NCBI RefSeq assembly: GCF_001194135.2
Contig: NC_069002.1
Span: forward strand, 22,467,695-22,531,694
Length of the DNA: 64,000 nt
Source: Octopus bimaculoides
Lineage: Eukaryota
Reading direction: 5' to 3'
In this document: positions 1-55,321 of the stretch, piece by piece
Layout of the letters: every line of letters starts with the position of its first letter
How positions within the stretch are numbered: the stretch's first letter is position 1
Notes under the pieces: model-generated
The model's input: the letters and a program-made list of their open reading frames with translations, nothing else
Database searches by the model: none
What the model was told of the DNA's origin: nothing
Translations under genes and position numbers: made by a program

Positions 1-1000
1 ATTCCATTTATGCACAACAGATTAGACTGTTGGAAAAAATTGCAAACAAGTAACCTTAGATGCCAAGAACTTTCCCAAGTATCCTAGATGTCCCTAATAA
101 CAGTTTTATGGAGCTGCACTAAACTAGGTCTTATGCCTATTTCTTCTTATCCATCAATTCAAATCTTTAGGAATAGTTCTTAATGCACCTACCTACAGGA
201 ATACATTTTACCCACAGTTTCTCTTAGTAAGCACTTCCCTTTACTGGTTGTCCTTAATGACAATATCTGGTCACTTAGCCTTCATCACCTGTCTGTATGT
301 ATTGCCATGTATGTTACATAGTATAACCATTTACTCTTTTCCTCAGATCATTTCCAGTGTATATTTATGGCATCTCTTTTTCTGGTAGTATTTTATTATT
401 CTAACACAATCTTCAGTCTCAGTCTGATGCATCTATAATATTCCTTCTAAATCTTCTTGTTCATCTATTTGTGTGTTGCAAACTGTTTAGTTGATTTTTA
501 AATATTTGTATGTCTGTCTGTAGTCTAATTCTCTTATCTCATTTCTTTATCTAATATGATATTAATTTTCTTTCCTTTTTGTCTATTCGGCCTTGACACA
601 TTTTTTTCTTATCTAAATCTCAAATCAGTTTCTTTAACAAATCCATGTACTATCCACAGTAGCAGTTCTATTTGTTTAAAACCTGAGGTGGATTATCTTT
701 TCATGGCATTACATCCAACTCCAGTTCTAGAAGTTAAAGGCGTCACTGCCAGGCAGAAAAGGAAGACTCTTCTTTTGGAAATTCCATTCTGAATAGAAAT
801 GGGTTTCATTTGGATAACCGCTTTTGTATCTGCAAAATTGATTGCTATTTACTCCTGACATGTTTTATCTATTTTCTTATCATTCAATACTACCTGACTA
901 AAAGACATTTTTTTCAGGATCCATGGATGGAGAACATTAAAAACCTTCTGGTATTCAATCAATGTCCTGCTACATAGACCCAACTCTCTCTCTGTGCAAT
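1..1000 (-). mobile_element. Highly decayed Dong/R4-type non-LTR retrotransposon remnant
   Basis: Minus-strand fragments resemble the PDIVIKD restriction-like endonuclease motif (~250-275), VGALRTIPK (~165-195) and a degenerate RT segment (~730-830); many stops. Confidence 0.5.
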
Positions 1001-3759
1001 CTTCACATATAGCTAGTTTAATCAATAATTGATCTTTACAACAGCCATATCAGCCTCTGAAGCATCCTTTCTACTCTTCTGGAAACAGTTTACCCCATAT
1101 TTTTTTTTTACTGTATGTGGGCTATTTCTGTTCCTGTTATGGCTAGCCACAATTTTTCATATACTGTGTTCATTGTTTTGACCAATTGGTCATTATTGTT
1201 ATTATTATTATTATTACTACTATTACAGACTTTATGGCAGTGTTTCACTTGACTAATATCTTTGGGAAAGGCATGAATGTGGCATTATCTCACATTTCTC
1301 CACAATATGATTTATATCATATTCAATTCATAATACCCATGTATGTGTTTAAAATCTCAAAAGACCAGGATCAATGCCTCAACATCACAGTCCCACCCTC
1401 CTACACACACACACACACACACACCCAGTGCAATTCCATATGTTTCTAGTAGATCTAGAATTAACAACTTAGTATTACTTCAAGTTGATAAAATTAAATA
1501 GAGAAAGACAAGATGTCAAATTGAAGTTTTAGTTATAAATCCTGATGTTCAGAGTTCAAATTCTGCTGCAGACAACTGCATTTTTCTGGGCCTGATAAAG
1601 TAACACACACACAATCTATCTGAAATAAATTTGTAAATTGTGCCAACAACCCTGTGTCTAGCCTTGTTGTGTAATCAGAGCTTGTGCTTCAGCAACAGGA
1701 CCACCAACAACCAGATTGGACGATCAGATTAACGACCCTCAACTTTCATTAAAGCCTTCTAACTACTCGCAAAATCCAGTTGCTTGTATACAACACACAC
1801 ACACACAGAATTAAAAACAGCATTATTATTGTTGTAATAAATAGATGGCATGGTTGGATGGTAATGACAAGATCTGATGAGTCAGACAACCACATTGTGC
1901 TCCAATATCTCAGTTTCAATATAGTTTTTATGGCTGGATGCTCCTTGTGATGGTTCAAGTACAGGGGTTGTTTTAATACAGGTGTTGTGAGAGACATTCT
2001 TAGAGTTAAAAACAAACAAACTCTAGAAAGTTATTTAACAAAGCCTACAACAAAACAAAAAATATATATAAATTTTGCTGTTTTTTTTTTTTTTTAATCA
2101 ATCATAAACATTCATCGTGTATTGCAATTATCTTTGCCTGTGTTTCGCTGATTTAATGTGTTTTTAAAACTGTAATAAATCTAATGATTAGCAATGAAGA
2201 TGTTTAGTTGATTGAAGAAATCTGTAATTTAGGCCATCACAGAATGGCAGAGGAGAGGGGAAAGAAATAGAAAAAGAAAAAGAACCTCATTGAAGATTTA
2301 ACTGTTGAAAATAGAGATTGATTCCAATATGGACAGAGCCACGAAGGAGACGACAAACAAATGCTTGCCTTCAGCAGCAACAGTGTTTCACACAAAATCT
2401 AAATCAAAATCTACAAGAAGTCTTCACTAATAATTGTTGTCATTCAGAGTTACTGCAGCTTAGTGAATAAAGATGCTAAATGCTGTGGATCATCAATCAA
2501 GTTTGCAAGTTCAATCCATCATAATGGTACTAAAGTGGCAGGTGTGTGAAGAAATTTCTTTAACCAATTGAATTATTACAGGTGTAAAAATTAATATAAT
2601 ATACACTTTAATGGTCTTCATCACATCAAAATCTCTTTTTCATTTTTGAAATCCTTGTTATTATTATTATTATTATTACTATTATTATTATTATTATAAA
2701 CATTTATTGTTATAAAAGTAATTATTATTACGGTGGAATGGCACAATCATCACAACTATCTTACAGTATCAATTCCAGCTCTTTACATTCAGAGTTCAAA
2801 TTCCACAGGGTTCATCTTTAGATTTCATCCTCTCAAGGTTAATAAAACAAAGTACATTCTGCTTAGATTAGAAATTACCATTAATCTTTGACAAGCTGAC
2901 AGAACTGTTAAATGTTTTCCGGCATTTCTTCTGAGTTCAACTTCTGTCAAGGTTGACTTTACCTTTCATCCTTTCGGGGTCGATAAAATAAGTACCAGTG
3001 AAACACTGGGATCAATGTAATCCCTTACCCCCTCCCCCATGCCAAAACTTGAAACAGTTATTATTACTATTATTATTATTAGTAGTAGCATTTTTATCAT
3101 TATATCTTCATATTCAAACCTTACACTGGATTAAATGATACAATGTTTACTTTCATTTATAGCAATTCCCACTCTTAATTTTAGCAGGTCAACATCAACA
3201 TATAAAATGCTAGTCTCTATTATTAGAAAACATATTCCTTGTCAATACAAGAAACTGTTTTCTCAGTCTTTTCAAATTTGGAGCTTGTTCTAAGTTGAGA
3301 TGATGCTAGGCAGCTGAAGGAGCTTTACCCAAAGAATACAGTACTAAGCTGTTACAGCTGCAATTCCTCCAGAAATTACAAGGGCAACATTTGAACTCAA
3401 AAGCTACTACCTACTGAACTGCTGTAGCAAACTTACAGTAATTTCAACACTTCACACTCATGTTTCCATCCTCTCATCAATAAATTTCATTACTTGATTG
3501 CATCAGTGCTAAGGAGACAAGAAGACAAAACCTGGTCTTTGAACAACGGAATTATACTCTGCAGACATTTTACTGTTAGGTTTCAATTCCAACACTTTGC
3601 TTCTAACATGGAAAATAATTATTATCTTGTCACCCACAATCACTCCATTTTCTTTATCTGTAATTGCCCTTTCTTCAAAGCATTGTGTTGGTAACATTGC
3701 TCTGAATGAAGTAAGGAGTGGTGATGCGTATTTTGTCTTGTGGCTTACAAAACAACTTC

Positions 3760-4070
3760 ACCAGAGTCAGTGGCACTGATGGTTATGATAAAGGTTCCAG
3801 ATGATCTGATCAATAGAACAGCCTGCAAGTGGCTGAGTACTCCACGGACGTGCATATCCTTAATGTAATCAAGGAGATTCGGGATAATATAGAATGTGAC
3901 AAGGGTGGGTCTTTGAATCATAGGTACGATTCAATTTTGCCAGCTGATTGGACTAGGGCAACATGAAATAAAGTGTCTTACTCAAGAACGCAATACACTG
4001 CCAGGTCTTGAACTCGTGACCTTATGATCATGAGCTGAATGCCCTAACCACTGAGTCATGCACCCTCATG
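3760..4070 (-). mobile_element. Decayed tRNA-headed SINE related to the copy at 38891
   Basis: Reverse complement resembles the 3' tail (gagtactcagccacttgca, gttccagatgatc) and the tRNA-like head (tcagtggttagggc). Confidence 0.55.
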
Positions 4071-4781
4071 AAGTGGTCAGTAAATGCACTAAGACAAAAG
4101 AGAAAGGATTGTGAAAAATCTTTAGTCTTGACCTGTTGAAAAGAGGATAACCTCTGCAGAGCTTGTACAATGGACACCCAGCAGACTGCATGAAGTGGTC
4201 AGTGACTGGAAGGGCATCGATCTGTATAATTCATGCCAAAAACTAGAACAAATAAGAGTCCGACATGGTTCAGAATAAGAACTTACACCATAATGACCTG
4301 TCCAACTCATGCCAGCAGGGAAAACAAACATATGAAATAATGATGTCAGTTTCCAGATGAAAGCAGAGAGGGTTATAAAGGGTGGATCGATGTTTAGGGC
4401 AAAGGATAACATCAATGAAGATCTTGTCAAGGACTGAAAATAGAAACATGCCAAGCCCACAACATCATGGTTGCACATGGCTGAGGAGGATTGCAGGGTA
4501 GCAAAGCTTCAGTCAAGAGTGACAGCTAGAATTGGCAGTCAGACTTGTTAACCTGTGTCAGATTGTATTGGCACCAAGCCATTAATTACTGATTTCTTCC
4601 AACTGCATTCAAGGTCAGTCAAAGATATCAAAACTCCAGTTTATCAATGGGATTTAGCTATTCAACCCTGAATGGGGGACCTGCAGTGTAAGTAAGATTT
4701 GATTAGATTCAAAGAGGGCAATAATTATTTTAAGGCTTTTATCCAACACTCTGCTGTTGCTATCTGCAATCTCAAACTACT

Positions 4782-4829
<48 letters not shown>

Positions 4830-4844
<15 letters not shown>

Positions 4845-5450
4845 ATTCTTTCTAGTTATTGGCATAAGGCCAGCAATTTTGAGGAGAGGGAGCAAGTCAA
4901 CAACTCCACCACGCACACTGCCCACTGTTCAACTGATACTCATTTCATCAACCACAAAAAAAAAAAAAAAACGAAAGGCTAAGTTGATGTTGATAGAATT
5001 TGAACTCAGGACATAAAAAGTCAGAAGAAATGCTGCTAAGCGTTTTGTCCAATGTGCAAACGATTCTGCCAGCTCACCATTTTCATAATAATATAACCCT
5101 TTTTACTATAGGAAGAAGGCCTGAAACTATTAAGGGGGTAGTTGATTACATTAACCCAGTGGCAGAATTTGAACTCAGAATGTAATGGGTGAAATACCAC
5201 TAAGCATTTTGTCCAAAGTGCTAACTATTCTGCCAGCTAATAATAATAATAATAATAATACTTTTTATTATAGGCACAAAGCCTGAAATTTTGTGGGGAG
5301 GAGGATAGTTGATTACATCAACTCCAAAAGGACAAAAGGCAGGGTTGACCCCAGTAGGATTTGAACTCAGAACATAAAGAGCCAGAAGGAATGCTACTGA
5401 ATATTTCGCCCAATGTGCTAACGATCCTGCCAGCTCACCACCACAACAAC

Positions 5451-5480
<30 letters not shown>
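4830..5480 (-). mobile_element. Cluster of about three tandem SINE copies (Meta-domain-like body) separated by (AAT)n
   Basis: Repeated blocks gaatttgaactcagaa...atgc(t/c)(g/a)ctaagc...ttctgccagctc, the same family as at 15540, 21640, 29890, 30650 and 41625. Confidence 0.8.
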
Positions 5481-5485
<5 letters not shown>

Positions 5486-5534
5486 CAACAACAACAACAA
5501 GGGTGTTAAGCATTAACAACGAAACCATCTTTTG

Positions 5535-5567
<33 letters not shown>

Positions 5568-5680
5568 ATGTGTGTGTGCGTGCATGCGTGTGAAGTGGCA
5601 CCTGATGTTTTGACTTTGCAGAGAGCTGGAGTGAGTTGGAGGAGTTAAGACAAGAGAACTCATTAGAAACTACTTCATAC

Positions 5681-5798
5681 CTTAATAAGCATTAAGATGT
5701 TTGCTGCTGTGTAAACAGTGAGACATAAGGAGACAAGGGTTAGAAACACCCCCAAGCCAGGATGACTACCAAAAACCGACAGGGAAATGAACCAGCCG
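5681..5798 (-). CDS. SCAMP: SCAMP TM4 exon variant B (alternative, mutually exclusive candidate): GWFISLSVFGSHPGLGVFLTLVSLCLTVYTAANILMLIK
   Basis: Acceptor gatttctttttctag|C, donor AAG|gtatga; 118 nt, phase 2/0, open frame. Starts with GW, has Gly at position 16, a hydrophobic helix and terminal Lys, like variant A and SCAMP1. Not in the ORF track. Confidence 0.88.
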
Positions 5799-7098
5799 CT
5801 AGAAAAAGAAATCCACAAATGTAGCAGTTTTGTTTATTTGTTATTTTTTCTTTTTAAAAAAATTTACTAAAATAAATAATAATAATAATAATAATAGGAG
5901 ACAACGAAGATTCAAATATTTCATTCCTTTGTTGCTGAGACATAAAAATAAAAGAAAAATAATTTATTAGAAGAGAGAGAAATAAAGAAAGAAAAATAAA
6001 GGTAAAAATAAAAATGAAAATTTCAAAAGTGTTTATGACAAATGTGAAAAAGTTACTAACAAGGGAGAGAAAAATATATAATTAGTAAAATAATAAAGAA
6101 AAATCGATTAAGTAGAGGTGAATGAGAAGTGTTTCTTTTTAATAAAAAAAAAAGCACATAAACAAAAGCATGCCACAAACAGGACTCCAAATAGTAATAG
6201 TAGTTAATGTTTTGCGTTCCATCTTCAGCTACTTTTGTATTGCAGTCCATAACCCCATAAACACAACTTGCTCTGCACTATCGACCCCTTTGCCACTAAG
6301 AAAAACACCCCACCACCATCACAGGTATTTCTTAGCAGAGAAGATTGATCGATTGGTTCTTAAACAAGGTAAGTAAAATAAGGTGAGAGGATTTGAATTT
6401 TAAAAAAGAAAAAAATTTTTTTTGTTTCTTTCAATTTATCAATATTTTGAAACGGGATCATGGAAAGAGGGTGGAGAGGAGGGGAGGTCAGTTCCAACAT
6501 TTGTTTTGCTCACCAGAAACAAAGAATTTGTAGTAAACGTAGAACTCGAACTTTTCCATTTGATTGCACAACTGGAAAGCGAAAGACGAAGGATGACAGC
6601 AGTTTTACTGCTTTAAAGACACAGTGGCATTATTTTTATTGCTTCTGTAATTCACTGTGACAATTTTAGAAATATTTCATCTAGAGCAAGTTGTACATGA
6701 AGGACCAAATAATAAAACAAACCCGCACAGAGTTAAGAAATATTTACAGCCCCTGTTCAGCAAAGCAGGAAAAAAAAAAATGGATTATTATTATTATTTT
6801 TATTACTAAACAATAATAAAAAACCAAAGAAGAAACAATGCATAAGACTGCAAGACATACAGTAGATAATAATTTTGAGGATGGAAGGGGGGCGGTCACG
6901 TGGACAGTCACGAGGGATGACGGTTCATGGGAGTGTAAATATGGTTATGGTAGCAGGAAGCGGTTATTACAAGGTTATTCATAAACTATATTAATGTTAA
7001 AGAACGACAAACAAAATAAATCAGAAGCAATGAACAAGGGGAGAGAACCCTGCAGGGAACGGGTATAGGTGCAACACACAAAAAGAAACAAACTGTAC

Positions 7099-7216
7099 CT
7101 TGACAAGTAGTACAAATGTAAATACAGAAATGAAAATAAAAAATATTCCAATAAATATCATGATGAGTCCGACGGCTATTTGTGAATTGACTGCTGTTAT
7201 ACCACTCAACAAACCA
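7099..7216 (-). CDS. SCAMP: SCAMP TM4 exon variant A: GLLSGITAVNSQIAVGLIMIFIGIFFIFISVFTFVLLVK
   Basis: Acceptor ttgcttatacttgcag|T, donor AAG|gtacag; 118 nt, phase 2/0. Aligns without gaps to the recalled SCAMP1 segment [22 protein letters not shown]...VMFKK. Inside supplied ORF 7021..7323. Confidence 0.9.
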
Positions 7217-7496
7217 CTGCAAGTATAAGCAAACAGTGAAACAAACAATGCTTTCTCATTTTTTGGTGTTGTATATGCTAAAATGAAGAGGATGATGAAG
7301 ACGATGGTGATGGTGGTAGACAATTGTTTCCCCTCAAAACAGTAATTTTTTTTTTAAAGGGCACATTGAAAAATGTAGTCTTAGATATACTATCTCACTA
7401 AAGTCAGAATGTGACAAACTAATGACATTAATAATAATAATGGTAATAATAATAATAAGTTAATGCATGTGCATATCTGGATGCATCACATAAATA

Positions 7497-7560: not shown

Positions 7561-7567
7561 ATATATG

Positions 7568-7771
7568 TATATTTATATAAGGGCATTACTATAGAAGAAT
7601 GCCTCATGCTAAACTACCATAATAAACACATTTTCACTGAACTCGAGGAAATGCAACTCTTGAGGCCAATTTTTGAGAGTTGCATTTCCTCGAGTTTAGT
7701 AAAAAAAATGTGTTTATTATGGTAGTTTAGCATGAGGCATTCTTCTATAGTAATGCCCTTAAATAAATATA
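7568..7771. repeat. Near-perfect foldback inverted repeat, arms 7568-7660 and 7676-7771, 15-nt loop
   Basis: aagggcattactatagaagaatgcctcatgctaaactaccataataaacaca...gaggaaatgcaactct recurs as its reverse complement. ORFs 7543(+) and 7614(-) translate to nearly the same peptide. Confidence 0.95.
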
Positions 7772-7784
7772 AATAAATATATTC

Positions 7785-7929: not shown

Positions 7930-7957
7930 GAATAATGATGGATTTTTNNNNNNNNNN

Positions 7958-9115: not shown

Positions 9116-10325
9116 CATCATCATCATCATCGTCGTTTAACGTCCGCTTTCCATGACTGAGGACTGGTGAAACCAGATGGCTACACCAGGCTCCAATCTG
9201 ATTTAGCAGAGTTTCTACAGCTGGATGCCCTTCCTAATGCCAACCATTCTGAGAGTGTAGTAGGTGCTTTTACGTGCCACCGGCACGAAGGCCAGTCAGG
9301 CGACACTGGCAACGACCACGCTCAAAATGGTGTATTTTACGTGCCACCTGCACAGGAGCCAGTTCGGCGGCACTGGCAACGATCTCGCTCGAATGTCTTT
9401 ACACGTGTCATCTGGCACAAGTGCCAGGAAGGCGATGCTGGGTACAGGGGCCATTGACGGTTTNNNNNNNNNNNNNNNNNNNNNNNNNNNNNNNNNNNNN
9501 NNNNNNNNNNNNNNNNNNNNNNNNNNNNNNNNNNNNNNNNNNNNNNNNNNNNNNNNNNNNNNNNNNNNNNNNNNNNNNNNNNNNNNNNNNNNNNNNNNNN
9601 NNNNNNNNNNNNNNNNNNNNNNNNNNNNNNNNNNNNNNNNNNNNNNNNNNNNNNNNNNNNNNNNNNNNNNNNNNNNNNNNNNNNNNNNNNNNNNNNNNNN
9701 NNNNNNNNNNNNNNNNNNNNNNNNNNNNNNNNNNNNNNNNNNNNNNNNNNNNNNNNNNNNNNNNNNNNNNNNNNNNNNNNNNNNNNNNNNNNNNNNNNNN
9801 NNNNNNNNNNNNNNNNNNNNNNNNNNNNNNNNNNNNNNNNNNNNNNNNNNNNNNNNNNNNNNNNNNNNNNNNNNNNNNNNNNNNNNNNNNNNNNNNNNNN
9901 NNNNNNATCCTCATCCATTCTGACCACGTGTCCATACCAGCGCAATCGTCTCTCTTGCACACCACAGCTGATGCTTCATAAGTTCAACTTTTCTCTCAAG
10001 GTATTAACACTCTGTCTAGTATGCACACTGTCATTACACATCCAGCGGAGCATACTGGCTTCATTCCTTCCGAACCTACGCATGTCCTCAGCAGTCACGG
10101 CCCATGTTTCACTGCCATGAAGCATGGCTGTTCGTACACATGCGTCATACAATCTGCCTTTTACTCAGAGAGAGAGACACTTTGTCGCCAGCAGAGGTAA
10201 GAGCTCTCTGAACTTTGCCCAGGCTATTCTTATTCTAGCAGCTACGCTTTCAGCGCACCCACCCCCACTACTAATTTGGTCACCAAGATAGCAGAAGCTA
10301 TCAACCACTTCTAGTTTTTCTCCAA
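9116..10325 (-). mobile_element. 5'-truncated RTE-LINE (RT C-terminus plus 3' UTR), gapped
   Basis: (CAT)n tail at 9116. Peptide QERRLRWYGHVVRMDED and rc of RLYDACVRTAMLHGSETW at ~10100-10160. N gap 9464-9906. Confidence 0.92.
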
Positions 10326-12490
10326 AGACCATGTAGATAATAAAGAGGTATCCCCATTTAATCAGTGAGGTAACACTGATGCAGTGATATGTGAGACCAA
10401 AGTTAACTCCATCAATGTAAATATAACAGGCAAAATGAGAAGCAAAGATGCATCAATGACGATGCGTCTTTCAGAAACAAAGACAGGAGTACAACTTTAT
10501 TTAGTAGCTGAAGGAGAATAACATTGAAAATAACATCAAATTATTTTACTATTAAGCAATTCATTAGCAGAGTTATGAGATCAGCAGAGAGAATGCTTTG
10601 CAATATCTGCTCTGGATTCTGTGCTAAGTTCAAATTCACTGAGGGCAAACTTTATATGAGCACAATGCTGGTGCAACCCTCCCTCCCACTGATCATGTCC
10701 TGAATGTTCCACTGGGTCCAGGACAGAAGGGCCAAGAGGACTCCCCATCTGTGCACAACTACATGAGCACCTAAAATAATTAACAAAAGCACAGTACATG
10801 CAATCAAGTTGTGTTCAACTATAAGTGACAGATATAGTTTTATTATGCTATTCAAGTGGTGAAACTTTAAGTAACACATATATCCAAATAATAGCACCAA
10901 ATATATATTAATTCTGGTTATAAACACTGAGTTAAAGTGTGATAGTTCACTTTCTTAGACAACAGTAGAATGATCTATCTGCTGAGGAAGAAATAAAGTC
11001 TAAAATAACTGAAATAGCTGGGGCATTTATCAAGACAGAAATGTTACTACATAAACGTACATACACACACACATATGCACACGCATGTGCATGTGTGCGC
11101 ACATAGATATATATTTCATTTGTTTCATTTCTCTATGCAAGCATGGGTTAAATGACTAATGTTATTGAGGCATTGTCTCTTAACGCAAGTAAGCCCATAT
11201 GTTTTTTCAAGTAAGGAATTTCTTATTCCACACAGCAATTAACTAAGAGGAGAAATGCCAACAGAACACTACTCTAACAGTGGGACTTTCAAAAGAGCAT
11301 GTGGAAGATACACACACACACACAACAAGCTTCTCTTTTTTTAAGTCTATCTACTAAGTCCATTCCCAAAGCTTTGGACAGTTCAGAGCTATAGTAGAAG
11401 ACATTTGCTCAAGATGCTATGCAGTGGGACTGAACCTGAATCCACATGGTTAGCAAGTGAGCTTCTTACAACCATGTCTGTGCTTGTATAGATATTTCAT
11501 GATAAGCTAAGAAGCAGTGATTTTCAACTAGTGTCAATCATAAGTTACACCATAAGTGGCGTCAAGACCAGCTGGTTTGTACTGGCATCAATTCATATTA
11601 GTCGTAATAATGAAGTCAAACCAAAGAGTAATATTTTGAAATCATTTAATTTGTACATTTCAGGTCTGCATAATATAGAATAGGAACAGGCATCCACAAC
11701 ATAAAACCTCCTAAATGAAAGCATTTAAAAAATATTTTTGAAATGCTTTAACTTAAGAAGGTTTACATAATGGATGCATTTTCTATTATATATTACTCAG
11801 ACCCAAAATGTGCCAAATAGACTATATATATATCTTTTATTTTGGTTGAGTCAGTCTCTTTCTAATCTGTGTGCCTGCAGGTGAAATTCAGAGCAGCAAG
11901 AGACTCACTTGACCAAATAAAGTATCTTTAATCTCTATCCAGTTATTGAGTGCTTTTTTTTCCAATAGTTAATACTTAATGTATATANNNNNNNNNNNNN
12001 NNNNNNNNNNNNNNNNNNNNNNNNNNNNNNNNNNNNNNNNNNNNNNNNNNNNNNNNNNNNNNNNNNNNNNNNNNNNNNNNNNNNNNNNNNNNNNNNNNNN
12101 NNNNNNNNNNNNNNNNNNNNNNNNNNNNNNNNNNNNNNNNNNNNNNNNNNNNNNNNNNNNNNNNNNNNNNNNNNNNNNNNNNNNNNNNNNNNNNNNNNNN
12201 NNNNNNNNNNNNNNNNNNNNNNNNNNNNNNNNNNNNNNNNNNNNNNNNNNNNNNNNNNNNNNNNNNNNNNNNNNNNNNNNNNNNNNNNNNNNNNNNNNNN
12301 NNNNNNNNNNNNNNNNNNNNNNNNNNNNNNNNNNNNNNNNNNNNNNNNNNNNNNNNNNNNNNNNNNNNNNNNNNNNNNNNNNNNNNNNNNNNNNNNNNNN
12401 NNNNNNNNNNNNNNNNNNNNNNNNNNNNNNNNNNNNNNNNNNNNNNNNNNNNNNNNNNNNNNNNNNNNNNNNNNNNNNNNNNNTATATAC

Positions 12491-17178: not shown

Positions 17179-17277
17179 ACTGTGAAACCTGGAATTCCCA
17201 AAGACATGATGACACATGTGCAAAATTGAAAGAAGAATACAAAGAAAAATATGAAGAAATTGAATGAGCTGTCACTC
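17179..17277 (-). CDS. SCAMP: SCAMP coding exon, TM3: (R)SDSSFNFFIFFFVFFFQFCTCVIMSLGIPGFT(V)
   Basis: Acceptor ttttctttttcag|G, donor GT|gtgagt; 99 nt, phase 2/2. RSDSSFNFFxFFF continues the E-peptide into TM3. Confidence 0.96.
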
Positions 17278-21370: not shown

Positions 21371-21530
21371 CTGAAAGCTTTATAGAGGGGTCGGTACCAA
21401 CAAACAAATGAACATGGAGTGAATAATAAGAACCAGAGTATAGAAAATCCGAATGTATTGGCTCCATCACTTCTGGCAACCAGATTAGCAAGACTTCCAA
21501 GGAAATTTAAGAATAATACAAAAACATACA
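21371..21530 (-). CDS. SCAMP: SCAMP coding exon, TM1-TM2 and E-peptide: (L)[52 protein letters not shown](R)
   Basis: Acceptor ttttttttgcag|TG, donor AG|gtgagt; 160 nt, phase 1/2. [24 protein letters not shown] is the conserved SCAMP E-peptide region. Confidence 0.97.
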
Positions 21531-23159: not shown

Positions 23160-23288
23160 ACATCCATAGGTAGTAAGCAAATTTTACAGTTTTCTGAAAT
23201 TCAAGAGGAATATCAACGCTGAAATCTTGGTAGAAGCAAGGTCCAATAGGGAACCATTTAGGCAGTGGTGGCCAGTTGTTCTGTTTGC
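23160..23288 (-). CDS. SCAMP: SCAMP coding exon: (G)[42 protein letters not shown]
   Basis: Acceptor ctatttacag|GC, donor GT|gtgagt; 129 nt, phase 1/1. NNWPPLP and [12 protein letters not shown] are diagnostic. Inside supplied ORF 22987..23316. Confidence 0.97.
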
Positions 23289-24155: not shown

Positions 24156-24602
24156 CCATAAATATAAAAAAAGAACCCGTAAACTTTCATTAGCCAAAGC
24201 CTAAAACATTTTATTTTATGATAAAATGAATAATGGATATGGCATACCCAGAAGATTAACTAAAAGAGCAATCTTTAATCGTTAATATAAAAAACATTTT
24301 AGAAATGTAGAGGTTAAGTGGCTTAAATGCTCTAATGGAGACAGCAGAACAAGTTTTATCTCTCAGTTGACTGCATGTGGTGTAAGGAGCTGAACTTAGT
24401 ACAGTGAGATAACAAAACAATCACTGAGTATAGAACAACAGACTTGTTTACAAAGAGATGTACCTATACAGGGTCACAGACAGTATAGCACATGGTAAGA
24501 AGAATATGTCATTGCTCGTCTTCTTAACCATCAGAAACGGTTACAGTAATGTGAGGAATGTAGAACTAAAACAAAACAAAAAACATTATAAACAAATTCT
24601 AC

Positions 24603-24669
24603 CTTGGAGCTGCATGTTGCGCATCTCTTGCTCTTTCCGTTGCAATTCTGCTGCTTTTCTTTCCAGCTC
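24603..24669 (-). CDS. SCAMP: SCAMP coding exon, coiled coil: ELERKAAELQRKEQEMRNMQLQ(G)
   Basis: Acceptor ctctcttttttttaacag|GAG, donor AAG|gtagaa; 67 nt, phase 0/1. ELERKAAEL is a SCAMP hallmark. Confidence 0.95.
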
Positions 24670-36132: not shown

Positions 36133-36285
36133 CTCTTGTCTGCGCTGCAGGTCACTAGTATCTATTTTCTGTGCCCCAACAGCTGAGTATGGTGGGGCCT
36201 CCTCAGATGGGGTCATAATGGCTGGCTGTGATGCTGGTGGCTGTGAGGGTTGAGGAGCAGGAATGGTTGGCCGGGAAGCTGGAAC
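36133..36285 (-). CDS. SCAMP: SCAMP coding exon, Pro-rich linker and start of coiled coil: VPASRPTIPAPQPSQPPASQPAIMTPSEEAPPYSAVGAQKIDTSDLQRRQE
   Basis: Acceptor aattcctttcag|GTT, donor GAG|gtgagt; 153 nt, phase 0/0. QPAIMxPxEExPxY and LxRRQE resemble SCAMP1. Confidence 0.93.
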
Positions 36286-51106: not shown

Positions 51107-53560
51107 TTTGTAGATGAGAAAATAATTTGTAGATAAGAAAAAATTTGCAGACAAGAAAAAATTTGCAGATAAGAAAAAATTTGTAGATAATAAAAAATTT
51201 GCCAATGTTCTGCGCCGTGAGGACCAAAGACTTGAAGTATTTCGTGTTGCAAGACAGTGTGTGAGAGAGAATTGTGATGTCGTCGGAGAAAAATGTGTTC
51301 GCATGGATGATGGTACGCTTGCACTAAATGAGGCTGCAAAGAAAGAGGTTTGGAGATGCCACTACGAAAGATTGCGCAATAAAGAGAATGAATGGGAGAG
51401 AGAGAGCCTGCCGAATGTCGACCCAACAGAGGGACCATCTATCCAAGTTGACAGTACCATGGTGACAAAGCAATTAAGAGTATGAAGACAGGGAAAGCCC
51501 CTGGCCCATCAGGAATCACTGCAGAGATGCTCAAAATATCTGGCAGTGTCGGCTATAGCCTAGTCACCTGTATTGCTAACCAAGTGATACAAGAAGGAGT
51601 CATACCCAATGACTGGTGTAGCAGCACCATAGTCAACTGCTACAAAGGTAAAGGCGACGCTTTAGATAAAAATAATTACAGAGGTATCAAGCTGTTAGAT
51701 CAGGTAATGAAAGTCCCGGAGAGGGTTATAGCCCAACTAATCAGGGAGCGAGTCAGTTTAGATGAGATGCAGTTTGGGTTTGTGCCAGGGAAAAGCACCA
51801 CTGATGCTATATTTCTGGTAAGACAGCTGCAGGAGAAATACCTAGCCTTGACATGGAGAAAGCCTTTGACAGGGTCCCCCGAACCCTTATCTGGTGGTCA
51901 ATGAGGAAACTAGGGATAGAAGAATGGTTAGTGAGAGCTGCGAGCCATGTACAGAAACACTGTCAGTAAGGTGAGGGTTGGCAACAAGTACAGTGATGAA
52001 TTCCGGGTAGAGGTAGGGGTCCACCAAGGCTCTGTCCTCAGACCCCTCCTATTTATCATAGTCCTCCAGGCAATAACAGAGGAATTCAAGATAGGATGCC
52101 CCTGGCAGCTCCTCTATTCTGATGACCTTGCACTAATTGCTGAGTCACTATCAGAACTAGAGGAGAAGTTTAAGGTGTGGAAGCAGGGTCTAGAATCGAA
52201 GGGCCTTAGAGTAAACCTAGCTAAAACCAAAGTCCTAATAAGTAGGAAGGTAGATAAAACACAAACCCCTTCAGGTAGATGGCCCTGTTCAATATGTAGA
52301 AAAGGTGTAGGTAGAAACTCTATAAGATGTACCCAGTGCAAGCTATGGACACATAAGAGGTGCAGCAATATCAAAGGAAGGTTAACTAGGAAGTTAGTGT
52401 TTGTATGTGGCNNNNNNNNNNNNNNNNNNNNNNNNNNNNNNNNTGTACGAACAGCCATGCTACATGGCAGTGAAACATGGGCCGTGACTGCTGAGGACAT
52501 GCGTAAGCTTGCAAGGAATGAAGCCAGTATTCTCCGATGGATGAGTAATGTCAGTGTGCATACCCGACAGTGTAAGTATCTTGAGAGAAAAGTTGAACAT
52601 AAGAAGCATCAGTTGTGGTGTGCAAGAGAGACAATTGCGCTGGTATGGACACTTGGCGAGAATGGATGAGGATAGCTGCGTGAAAAAGTGCCACACCCTA
52701 GCGGTTGAGGGAACCCATGGCCTTGGAAGACCTGGGATGAGGTGGTGAAGCACGACCTCTGAACATTAAGCCTCACCGAGACAATGACTTCTGACCGTGA
52801 CCTTTGGAAATATGCTGTGCATGAGAGGACCCATCAAGCCAAGTGAGACCGAAATCCAAGGCCTATGCTAGGGATGTAGCCAGCCCACTTACGCGTAACA
52901 TTCCTTCATTGGACACTAAACTCCGCTTGCGAAGACATGGTGAGGCAAGTGAAATCGAAATCAAACTAAATTTGTAGGAACACTAAACTCCGCTTGCGAA
53001 GACCTGTTGTGGCAAGCGAAAGCGAAATCGTGATGGCACCTGTACCAGTGGAGCACTAAGAGCACCGTCCGAGCGCGATCGTTGCCAGAGCAGCTGTCTG
53101 GCTTCCGTGCCGGTGGCACGTAAATAGCACCATTTGAGCGTAATCATTGCCAGTGCCGATGGACTGGCCCCTATGCAGGTGACACATAAAATACACCATT
53201 TTGAACGTGGCCGTTGATCGTTACAAACGTCGCCTCCCTGGCACTTGTGCCAGTGGCACGTGAAAAGACATTCAAGCGAGATCGTTGCCAGTGCCAATGG
53301 ACTGGCTCCTGTACAGGTGGCACGTAAAATACACCATTTCAAGCGTGGCCGTCGCCAGTACCGCCTGACTGGCCCTCGTGCCGGTGGCACATGAAAGCAC
53401 CCACTACACTCTCGGAGTGGTTGGCATTAGGAAGGGCATCCAGCTGTAGAAACTCTGCCAAATCAGATTGGAGCCTGGTGTCGCCTCCTGGTCCACCAGT
53501 CCTCAGTCAAATCGTCCAACCCATGCTAGCATGGAAAGCGGACGATAAACGACGATGATG
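51107..53560 (+). mobile_element. Largest RTE-LINE copy: 5'-truncated, frameshifted RT ORF, zinc-finger-like segment, subrepeated 3' UTR and (GAT)n tail
   Basis: ORFs 51261-52669: KAPGPSG, WCSSTIVNCYKGKGD, NYRGIKLL, MQFGFVPGKSTTDAIF, GVHQGSVLRPLLF, LYSDDL, VNLAKTK, CSICRKGV...CTQCKLWTHKRCS. Confidence 0.97.
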
Positions 53561-54810: not shown

Positions 54811-54897
54811 CGGCTGGGTGTTGTTCTTATCAGCGAAAGGGTTGAAATCATCCAAAGTGCCTTGGGTGCCACTGGTTGCCTGTCTGACGGAGGGATC
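54811..54897 (-). CDS. SCAMP: SCAMP coding exon (probably exon 2), DPSVRQATSGTQGTLDDFNPFADKNNTQP, with an NPF motif
   Basis: Acceptor tttatctgtttccag|GAT, donor CCG|gtaaac; 87 nt, phase 0/0. DPSV...(D/E)xNPF matches the SCAMP N-terminal NPF-repeat region as recalled from SCAMP1. Not in the ORF track. Confidence 0.9.
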
Positions 54898-55321
54898 CTG
54901 GAAACAGATAAACAGTCGCGTCAAGTAATGGAATCACCATGCATCCTTGCATCAGTGGAGGGCAGATATTAGCTGAAGATGGTGGAATAGAGAGATACAG
55001 ACATGTGCATGGAAGAAAAGGAGAGAGAGGAACAAGTAAAGGGCAGAGTAAAAGAGAGACTGGATCTGGGAGCGGGTGAATGAGAGAGAGAGATCAGTTG
55101 AATCAAATGTTATTGTAGAAATGAAATGTGGCTTTCGAAAACAGAAGTAAATATAACCTAAAGTAAACTCTGTGAAGAGAGTGTGTATATATACATTTAA
55201 AATCTAAGATAGGGAAAGAGAGAGAGAGAGAGAGAGAGATGAAGTGAACCTAACTGAAATGGTTCTTTCCAACCTCAGTAACAAAAGTTTCCATTCCAAC
55301 TTCCTATTCTAAGTGCAGTGA

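Follow-up and report, generated by a model that had tools for sequence, protein, structure and literature searches.

Mutually exclusive homologous exons that arose by tandem duplication have been surveyed for human (Martinez Gomez et al. 2021, PMC8373072) in a study that cites the Drosophila survey of Hatje & Kollmar; in the main text of that human catalogue, SCAMP has 0 occurrences. Here we describe a candidate pair of this kind in a SCAMP gene of Octopus bimaculoides, located on the minus strand of a 64,000-nucleotide (nt) stretch of genomic DNA (RefSeq assembly GCF_001194135.2, contig NC_069002.1, positions 22,467,695 to 22,531,694; hereafter the window, numbered from its first letter). Its two members, exon A and exon B, each encode the end of the second luminal loop and the fourth transmembrane helix (TM4). 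Like the known tandem-duplicated exclusive exons, A and B are adjacent, of common origin and equal in length and phase, appear one per transcript, exchange a structural segment and are ancient. They differ from the exons of the human catalogue in their distribution: this pair occurs in molluscs, a priapulid has a pair that may be related, and the vertebrate SCAMPs among our matches show only one TM4 type.

SCAMPs are conserved constituents of the carriers that serve secretion, synapses and endocytosis, and what their membrane core does is poorly understood. Vertebrate SCAMP1-5 belong to the same PF04144 family, share the four-helix core and vary, as the mollusc forms do, in loop 2 and TM4; they are, however, whole-gene paralogues, whereas molluscs keep one gene (two in stylommatophorans) plus an alternate exon. 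Exclusive exon pairs that are enforced by the reading frame and coupled to nonsense-mediated decay are likewise a known kind. The octopus pair resembles them in having a length that is not a multiple of 3, so that inclusion of both exons or of neither breaks the frame, and differs in that a product lacking both exons is annotated and that decay of the product containing both is a prediction.

The locus is very probably a single SCAMP gene in which an ancient tandem duplication of the TM4 exon produced A and B, with one copy entering each mRNA to give two isoforms of 344 amino acids (aa). The exon for the end of luminal loop 2 and TM4 would have been duplicated before the cephalopod, gastropod and bivalve lineages split; each mature mRNA would carry exactly one of A and B, and the resulting isoforms would be identical save for 39 residues.

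Two interchangeable TM4 exons in the octopus SCAMP gene

Most of a SCAMP gene lies on the minus strand of the window; its exons were mapped with the annotated exon-A isoform (P0121), and its splice junctions were then solved. The exons and the intron between A and B are as follows, a slash marking an exon boundary here and below:

54811..54900, minus strand: NPF-repeat N-terminal exon, encoding DPSVRQATSGTQGTLDDFNPFADKNNTQP; 5' boundary approximate
36133..36285, minus strand: Pro-rich linker exon, 153 nt, encoding the linker and MTPSEEAPPY...QRRQE
24598..24669, minus strand: coiled-segment exon, encoding ELERKAAELQRKEQEMRNMQLQG; 3' boundary approximate
23160..23286, minus strand: pre-TM1/TM1 exon, encoding NNWPPLP...YYLWM; 5' boundary approximate
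21371..21530, minus strand: TM2 and conserved 'E-peptide' exon, 160 nt
17179..17277, minus strand: TM3 exon, 99 nt, ending ...ACAGT/gtgagt
7099..7216, minus strand: exon A (A-type TM4), 118 nt, phase 2 to 0, encoding (V)GLLSGITAVNSQIAVGLIMIFIGIFFIFISVFTFVLLVK, a 100% match to P0121
5799..7098, minus strand: A-B intron, 1300 nt without a run of N, with an (AAU)n tract at 6784-6808 (RNA sense)
5681..5798, minus strand: exon B (B-type TM4), 118 nt, phase 2 to 0, encoding (V)GWFISLSVFGSHPGLGVFLTLVSLCLTVYTAANILMLIK, equal to the segment of the exon-B isoform (P0122)

The window exons match P0121 over all aligned exons, at 89-100% per tblastn segment, with the mismatches lying at exon-intron edges. 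The terminal coding exon is absent from positions 1..5680 and is located outside the window, so that the window does not contain the junctions of A and B with that exon. Membership of the SCAMP family is evident from the PF04144 match, the NPF repeats, the NWPPLP motif and the CWYRP(I/L)YKAFR segment: P0121 contains three NPFAD motifs, NNWPPLPK and a CWYRP(I/L)YKAFR-type segment between TM2 and TM3, and the precomputed Pfam domain PF04144.19 is carried by P0121, P0122 and all listed SCAMP matches.

Exon A has the acceptor ...cttgcAG/ and the donor AAG/gtacag, and exon B has the acceptor ...ttctAG/ and the donor AAG/gtatga; a pyrimidine-rich tract precedes the AG of each, and only frame 1 is open in either exon. 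The TM3 exon leaves GT, a Val codon that is completed by T from exon A or by C from exon B, yielding VGLLSGITAVNSQIAVGLIMIFIGIFFIFISVFTFVLLVK with A and VGWFISLSVFGSHPGLGVFLTLVSLCLTVYTAANILMLIK with B. Equal in length and in phase, the two exons are thus interchangeable, and either restores the frame with the TM3 exon. They lie next to each other, with no constitutive exon and no other SCAMP-like open reading frame in the gap-free intron that separates them.

Annotated isoforms reproduce this arrangement. The exon-A form of 344 aa is represented in O. bimaculoides by XP_052831660.1/XP_052831661.1 (P0121) and, in the profile search, by O. sinensis XP_029649553.1. The exon-B form, also of 344 aa, is represented in O. 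bimaculoides by XP_052831662.1/XP_052831665.1 (P0122), and elsewhere by O. sinensis XP_029649554.1, which is identical to O. vulgaris CAI9738819.1, and by Argonauta hians GAB1607691.1 (345 aa). Shorter models of 273 aa exist for both forms (A, UniProt A0A0L8GRW0; B, UniProt A0A0L8GSB6 / XP_014778581.1). Direct comparison showed that the exon B translation is the same as the corresponding P0122 segment. P0121 and P0122 differ only in the 39 exon-specific residues and share the C-terminus that follows the segment, VHRVYRSTGASFQKAQ...; the sequence after the A or B segment is VHRVYRSTGASFQKAQAEFAQGVMRNE in both. Use of one exon or the other holds among the annotated O. bimaculoides isoforms and likewise in O. 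sinensis.

An earlier sequence-only reading of this stretch had proposed two 118-nt exons at 7099-7216 and 5681-5798, phase 2 to 0, with AAG/GT donors and open frames, either of which would join in frame (GT+T or GT+C = Val) to a TM3 exon ending at 17179, and had suggested a single gene whose two isoforms would differ in loop 2 and TM4. Re-reading of both exons and of the TM3 junction confirmed these features, and RefSeq XP_052831660/61 and XP_052831662/65 are the two isoforms that it had anticipated.

Homology and copy number of the TM4 exons

Octopus A and B are identical at only 6/40 aa and 50/118 nt, a pairwise similarity that proves nothing by itself, and a family hidden Markov model (HMM) of the TM4 exon was therefore built from 59 non-octopus SCAMPs and run on 2711 six-frame fragments of the window. 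The model matched exon A with 35.6 bits (E 9e-10) and exon B with 30.7 bits (E 3e-8), while the next-best score in the window was 6.9 bits (E 0.86), leaving no third locus. Both exons can be aligned gap-free with the TM4 region of the 59 SCAMPs, and they are homologous by this shared family profile. A corresponding TM3 model found a single locus in the window (47.9 bits; next best 8.9). Two loci for TM4 and one for TM3 indicate that the window holds exactly two TM4 exons and that the other exons are single-copy, although runs of N in the intron upstream of A could conceal further exons. No second TM3 exon of the kind seen in oysters is present in the octopus window.

The same data bear on whether A and B might instead come from tandem paralogous genes or from a duplication made by the assembly. 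The window does belong to a gapped draft scaffold with 13 runs of N, and three of these, at 7948-7957 (the closest to the pair), 9464-9906 and 11988-12483, all lie inside the TM3-to-A intron. A and B themselves, however, are 1300 nt apart on gap-free sequence, the other SCAMP exons occur once in the window, the isoforms share identical termini and the same arrangement is found in an independent snail assembly. A DNA identity of only 42% between A and B further shows that they are not haplotigs. An origin of exon B in a separate paralogue, which the sequence-only reading had put forward as the outcome that would speak against it, is thus hardly credible, as is an assembly artefact.

Reading-frame consequences of including both exons or neither

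With a length of 118 nt, which is not a multiple of 3, only mRNAs that include a single copy encode a full SCAMP. When the TM3 exon, A and B are joined, the product reads ...VLLVK RLVHFPVGFW-stop; the frame closes after 10 codons of B, and the last 85 nt of that exon lie beyond the stop. The usual rule for nonsense-mediated decay places the limit at 50-55 nt, and the mRNA containing A and B would by this rule be removed. The frame incompatibility of double inclusion and of double skipping is demonstrated; combined with decay of the A+B product, it would leave single-inclusion mRNAs as the only ones encoding a four-helix SCAMP.

Skipping of both exons explains a further annotated octopus protein. 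XP_014778582.1 (P0001), the top match of the first protein search, reads ...GIPGFTV and then continues into an unrelated tail of 88 residues. A single nucleotide sequence can encode both the normal C-terminus (frame 0) and the P0001 tail (as 'GT' plus the terminal exon) in 54/54 codons, which identifies P0001 as a transcript lacking A and B in which the terminal exon is read with a frameshift.

This product raises the possibility of a three-way choice, in which a three-helix SCAMP bearing the novel tail would be a meaningful output of the gene. The isoform is annotated, its tail is exactly the terminal exon in the shifted frame, and, provided that this exon is the last, the stop would not trigger nonsense-mediated decay. 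The tail is nevertheless an out-of-frame reading without homologues, no like product occurs among the mollusc matches and the model derives from an earlier, gapped assembly, which together make a functional role for it very unlikely.

Two types of TM4 helix

The A and B helices fall into two types that recur among molluscs. Type-specific HMMs built from non-octopus mollusc sequences gave octopus A 53.2 bits with the A model and 25.5 with the B model, and octopus B 1.7 bits with the A model and 40.8 with the B model. Type residues were counted in 18 A-type and 40 B-type mollusc products of exactly 40 residues, the octopus pair included. The A-type consensus is VGIIsGL..VG.N.AvGLIMIFiGIFFglLAV.SFa.LVK, in which L18, M20, F22 and G24 are invariant. 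B-type products have W3 (39/40), N5 (35/40) and S or T at position 28 (40/40), and at position 30 they have C, E, N, Y, K, T or H in 37/40, where A-type products mostly have Leu; this residue is Y in octopus, E in many gastropods and C in bivalves. The A type is a very hydrophobic, Phe/Gly-rich helix with an invariant GLIMIF.G core; the B type is marked by W3, by S/T28 and, at position 30, by a polar residue in mid-membrane.

In octopus, the 25-residue core of A has a mean Kyte-Doolittle value of 2.94, with 6 Phe and 2 polar residues (S, T, N, Q, Y, C, H), and that of B has a mean of 2.02, with 1 Phe and 7 polar residues including an Asn. From these compositions, exchange of A for B likely changes the packing of TM4 against the other helices, partner proteins or lipids, and the TM4 variants should differ in helix packing, oligomerisation, or lipid or cargo interactions in the vesicle membrane.

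The octopus B sequence raises the question of whether exon B is a decaying, non-functional pseudo-exon that is spliced as noise and annotated for its open frame. Its identity to A is 15%, it lacks N5 and M20 as the most divergent B-type of the mollusc set, and its use in octopus is known from gene models rather than reads. On the other side, its splice sites, length and phase are intact, and it keeps the B-type hallmarks W3, G17, T28 and the polar residue 30, with 41 bits for the B-type HMM against 1.7 for the A-type. The B peptide is identical at 40/40 positions in three Octopus species (O. bimaculoides, O. sinensis and O. vulgaris) and at 37/40 in Argonauta, where the changes are conservative (V to A, S to T and Y to F). 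Such conservation across octopods is what purifying selection predicts, unlike the behaviour of a decaying pseudo-exon, and the B type is present in many annotated mollusc proteins and transcript contigs. We regard a pseudo-exon as highly improbable. The conserved orthologue of exon B on which the sequence-only reading had staked its case is found in O. sinensis and O. vulgaris, in Argonauta, in gastropods and in bivalves.

Age and distribution of the exon pair

The SCAMP locus of the land snail Candidula (L001) has a B-type exon, GWINALSIVGSQPAAGGIMLVIAFLFTLEAVVSMWLLIK, preceded at a distance of about 2 kb by an A-type exon, ...GIISGLTVVGSNVAVGLIMIFIGILFGILAVVSFAILIK; each is 118 nt long, runs from phase 2 to 0 and ends in AAG/GT. 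Octopus and snail are identical at 23/40 residues in A and 13/40 in B, compared with 6/40 between octopus A and B. A-type and B-type isoforms are annotated on the same contig in Physella acuta (X6 and X4), Saccostrea echinata (X1 and X3/X4) and Ostrea edulis (X2 and X7/X8), and isoforms X1 and X7/X8 of Crassostrea gigas are likewise A-type and B-type; in many further gastropods and bivalves, one type or the other is annotated. Logan contigs of 1.1-3.5 kb encode full-length proteins of the A type (P0144, P0151) and of the B type (P0139, P0147), and since genomic SCAMP loci span tens of kb, these short contigs are consistent with spliced mRNAs of both types. Gene models that concatenate TM4 exons (Nucella P0128, Mya P0131 and Priapulus P0206) are an independent sign of a tandem layout. 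The occurrence of the same A and B types in cephalopods, gastropods and bivalves places the duplication before the divergence of these groups.

Beyond molluscs the evidence is harder to read. In Priapulus caudatus, two TM4 exons of 130 and 118 nt lie in tandem and share the same phases. The type-specific HMMs gave no clear A or B assignment for the Priapulus pair or for spiders, Lingula and annelids, and, of the two mollusc types, B was the nearer one for all the deuterostome TM4 segments tested, including those of vertebrates. One TM4 exon was found in the examined Papilio locus, which contains 804 N. A pattern search and three-frame translation of the interval between the TM4 and terminal exons of the brittle star Amphiura revealed no second TM4 exon there, and a skim of the open-reading-frame list alone recognised no TM4 exon in the shrimp SCAMP locus. 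The origin of the pair may be older than molluscs, or there may have been more than one duplication; given the tandem TM4 exons of the priapulid, a switch between the two types might be as old as protostomes.

Several molluscs elaborate on the arrangement. The Mya model P0131 (compared with P0153) contains three TM4 segments, one A-type and two distinct B-types, which suggests a three-exon cluster. Pteriomorph bivalves (P0180, P0181, P0173, P0189 and P0138) have a choice of TM3 exons as well, SDSSFNFFVFFFIFFFQFICTIIQCLGITGYT and SDSSFSFFVFFFNFFFQAICCIVMLIGITDFT; Crassostrea has annotations for all four combinations of TM3 and TM4, and a Pinctada model concatenates both TM3 exons. Stylommatophoran snails have two SCAMP genes on different contigs (Candidula P0002/P0137, Bradybaena P0123/P0130 and Arion P0127/P0133), consistent with a lineage-specific duplication of the gene or the genome.

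Candidate mechanisms of exon choice

Two general mechanisms that could keep neighbouring exons apart were considered and ruled out. Steric hindrance applies to introns shorter than ~60-70 nt, and the A-B intron measures 1300 nt in octopus and ~2 kb in Candidula. Incompatibility between U2 and U12 splice sites is excluded by the ordinary GT donors (gtgagt for TM3, gtacag for A and gtatga for B, judged against the U12-type criterion /RTATCCTT) and AG acceptors.

Pairing between intronic RNA elements was considered as well. Within the A-B intron, the (AAU)n tract at 6784-6808 has stretches of 20-32 nt that are 84-95% complementary to four (AUU)n tracts, at 7420-7458, 5865-5896, 5445-5485 and 5238-5269, which lie upstream of A and both upstream and downstream of B; 5/16 such tracts of the 64-kb window fall within 2.2 kb around the two exons. 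A single intronic tract complementary to tracts beside each exon bears a superficial likeness to the docking and selector sequences of Dscam and 14-3-3 zeta, and alternate pairing of the (AAU)n tract with the (AUU)n tracts could in principle loop out one exon at a time. This explanation draws on the length of the complementarity and on the clustering of the tracts near A and B. The tracts are, however, pure A/U trinucleotide microsatellites, which pair weakly and are prone to cluster, the Candidula locus has no comparable complementarity, and octopus is the one cephalopod locus in the comparison. The complementarity may be mere clustering of microsatellites, and choice by docking and selector pairing is very unlikely; we do not class the locus with Dscam and 14-3-3 zeta.

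The TM3-to-A intron also contains a near-perfect hairpin of 218 nt (window 7561-7778, minus-strand RNA), ~350-560 nt upstream of A, with 74-nt arms of 96% complementarity and a nested 30-nt pair (-141.5 kcal/mol; z = -26.8 relative to shuffled sequences). This may be an inverted-repeat element resembling a miniature inverted-repeat transposable element, or a long double-stranded RNA and possible ADAR substrate.

With an ancient tandem pair of which one copy enters each mRNA as the favoured explanation, the choice between A and B would probably be made by trans-acting splicing factors, possibly in a tissue-dependent manner, and a tissue-regulated 'switch' between the two is what such control would amount to. 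Several points weigh against this explanation. For octopus, the strictness of exclusivity, the tissue pattern and the relative use are judged from gene models (those of Gnomon and of the older annotation that underlies the UniProt entries). The isoform that skips both exons is annotated too, and transcripts are therefore not strictly limited to one exon or the other. Among the B-types compared, that of octopus diverges most and is without N5 and M20, which are near-invariant elsewhere, and this could reflect relaxed or changed constraint. Lastly, the search for a conserved RNA structure or regulatory element found none, the candidates being A/U microsatellites in octopus and chance-level matches in Candidula.

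Neighbouring genes and repeats

An AP-3 beta gene (Adaptin_N and AP3B1_C domains) adjoins the 5' end of the SCAMP gene on the opposite strand in the snail (L001 1-3417), the priapulid (L004 1-7746) and the brittle star (L005 1-21137), and in the brittle star it overlaps the start of the annotated SCAMP range. In human, SCAMP1 and AP3B1 are also neighbours. The AP3B1 neighbour is not within the octopus window, where tblastx returned retrotransposon fragments only. Fragments of retrotransposon reverse transcriptase lie in the SCAMP introns at 51515-52237 (plus strand), 20548-20252 (minus strand) and 10329-9907 (minus strand), and one of them abuts the run of N at 9464-9906.

Discussion

Our full-text literature search found no SCAMP for which alternative TM4 exons had been described, in keeping with the sequence-only reading, which knew of no described exclusive TM4 exon in a SCAMP gene; the novelty implied there is reduced by the annotation of both isoforms. 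The A/B event is already captured by public annotation (RefSeq and UniProt) and has been in the databases for years. The octopus pair is thus undescribed in papers, yet it is of the textbook tandem-exon-duplication kind, which is common, and it is annotated already. New here are the dating of the duplication to the base of molluscs, the residues that define the two types, the explanation of XP_014778582.1 and the elaborations in other molluscs, a gain that lies in description and dating and that includes no new mechanism.

In the evolution of splicing, the pair is a further case of an ancient tandem-exon substitution that affects a membrane protein. The retention of two sharply distinct TM4 types through mollusc history indicates that the identity of the TM4 helix matters, and the natural A/B pair provides ready variants for probing TM4 packing, oligomerisation and contacts with lipid or cargo. 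We hold more tentatively, at somewhat short of even chances, that cephalopods, gastropods and bivalves have kept a splicing switch for more than 500 million years, by which one gene would make two functionally distinct vesicle-membrane proteins for different tissues or vesicle classes, one with an ultra-hydrophobic, Phe/Gly-rich TM4 and the other with a polar or acidic residue midway through the membrane. If such an ancient functional switch exists, it would be the invertebrate counterpart of the division of labour among vertebrate SCAMP1-5 and a natural experiment on the role of TM4.

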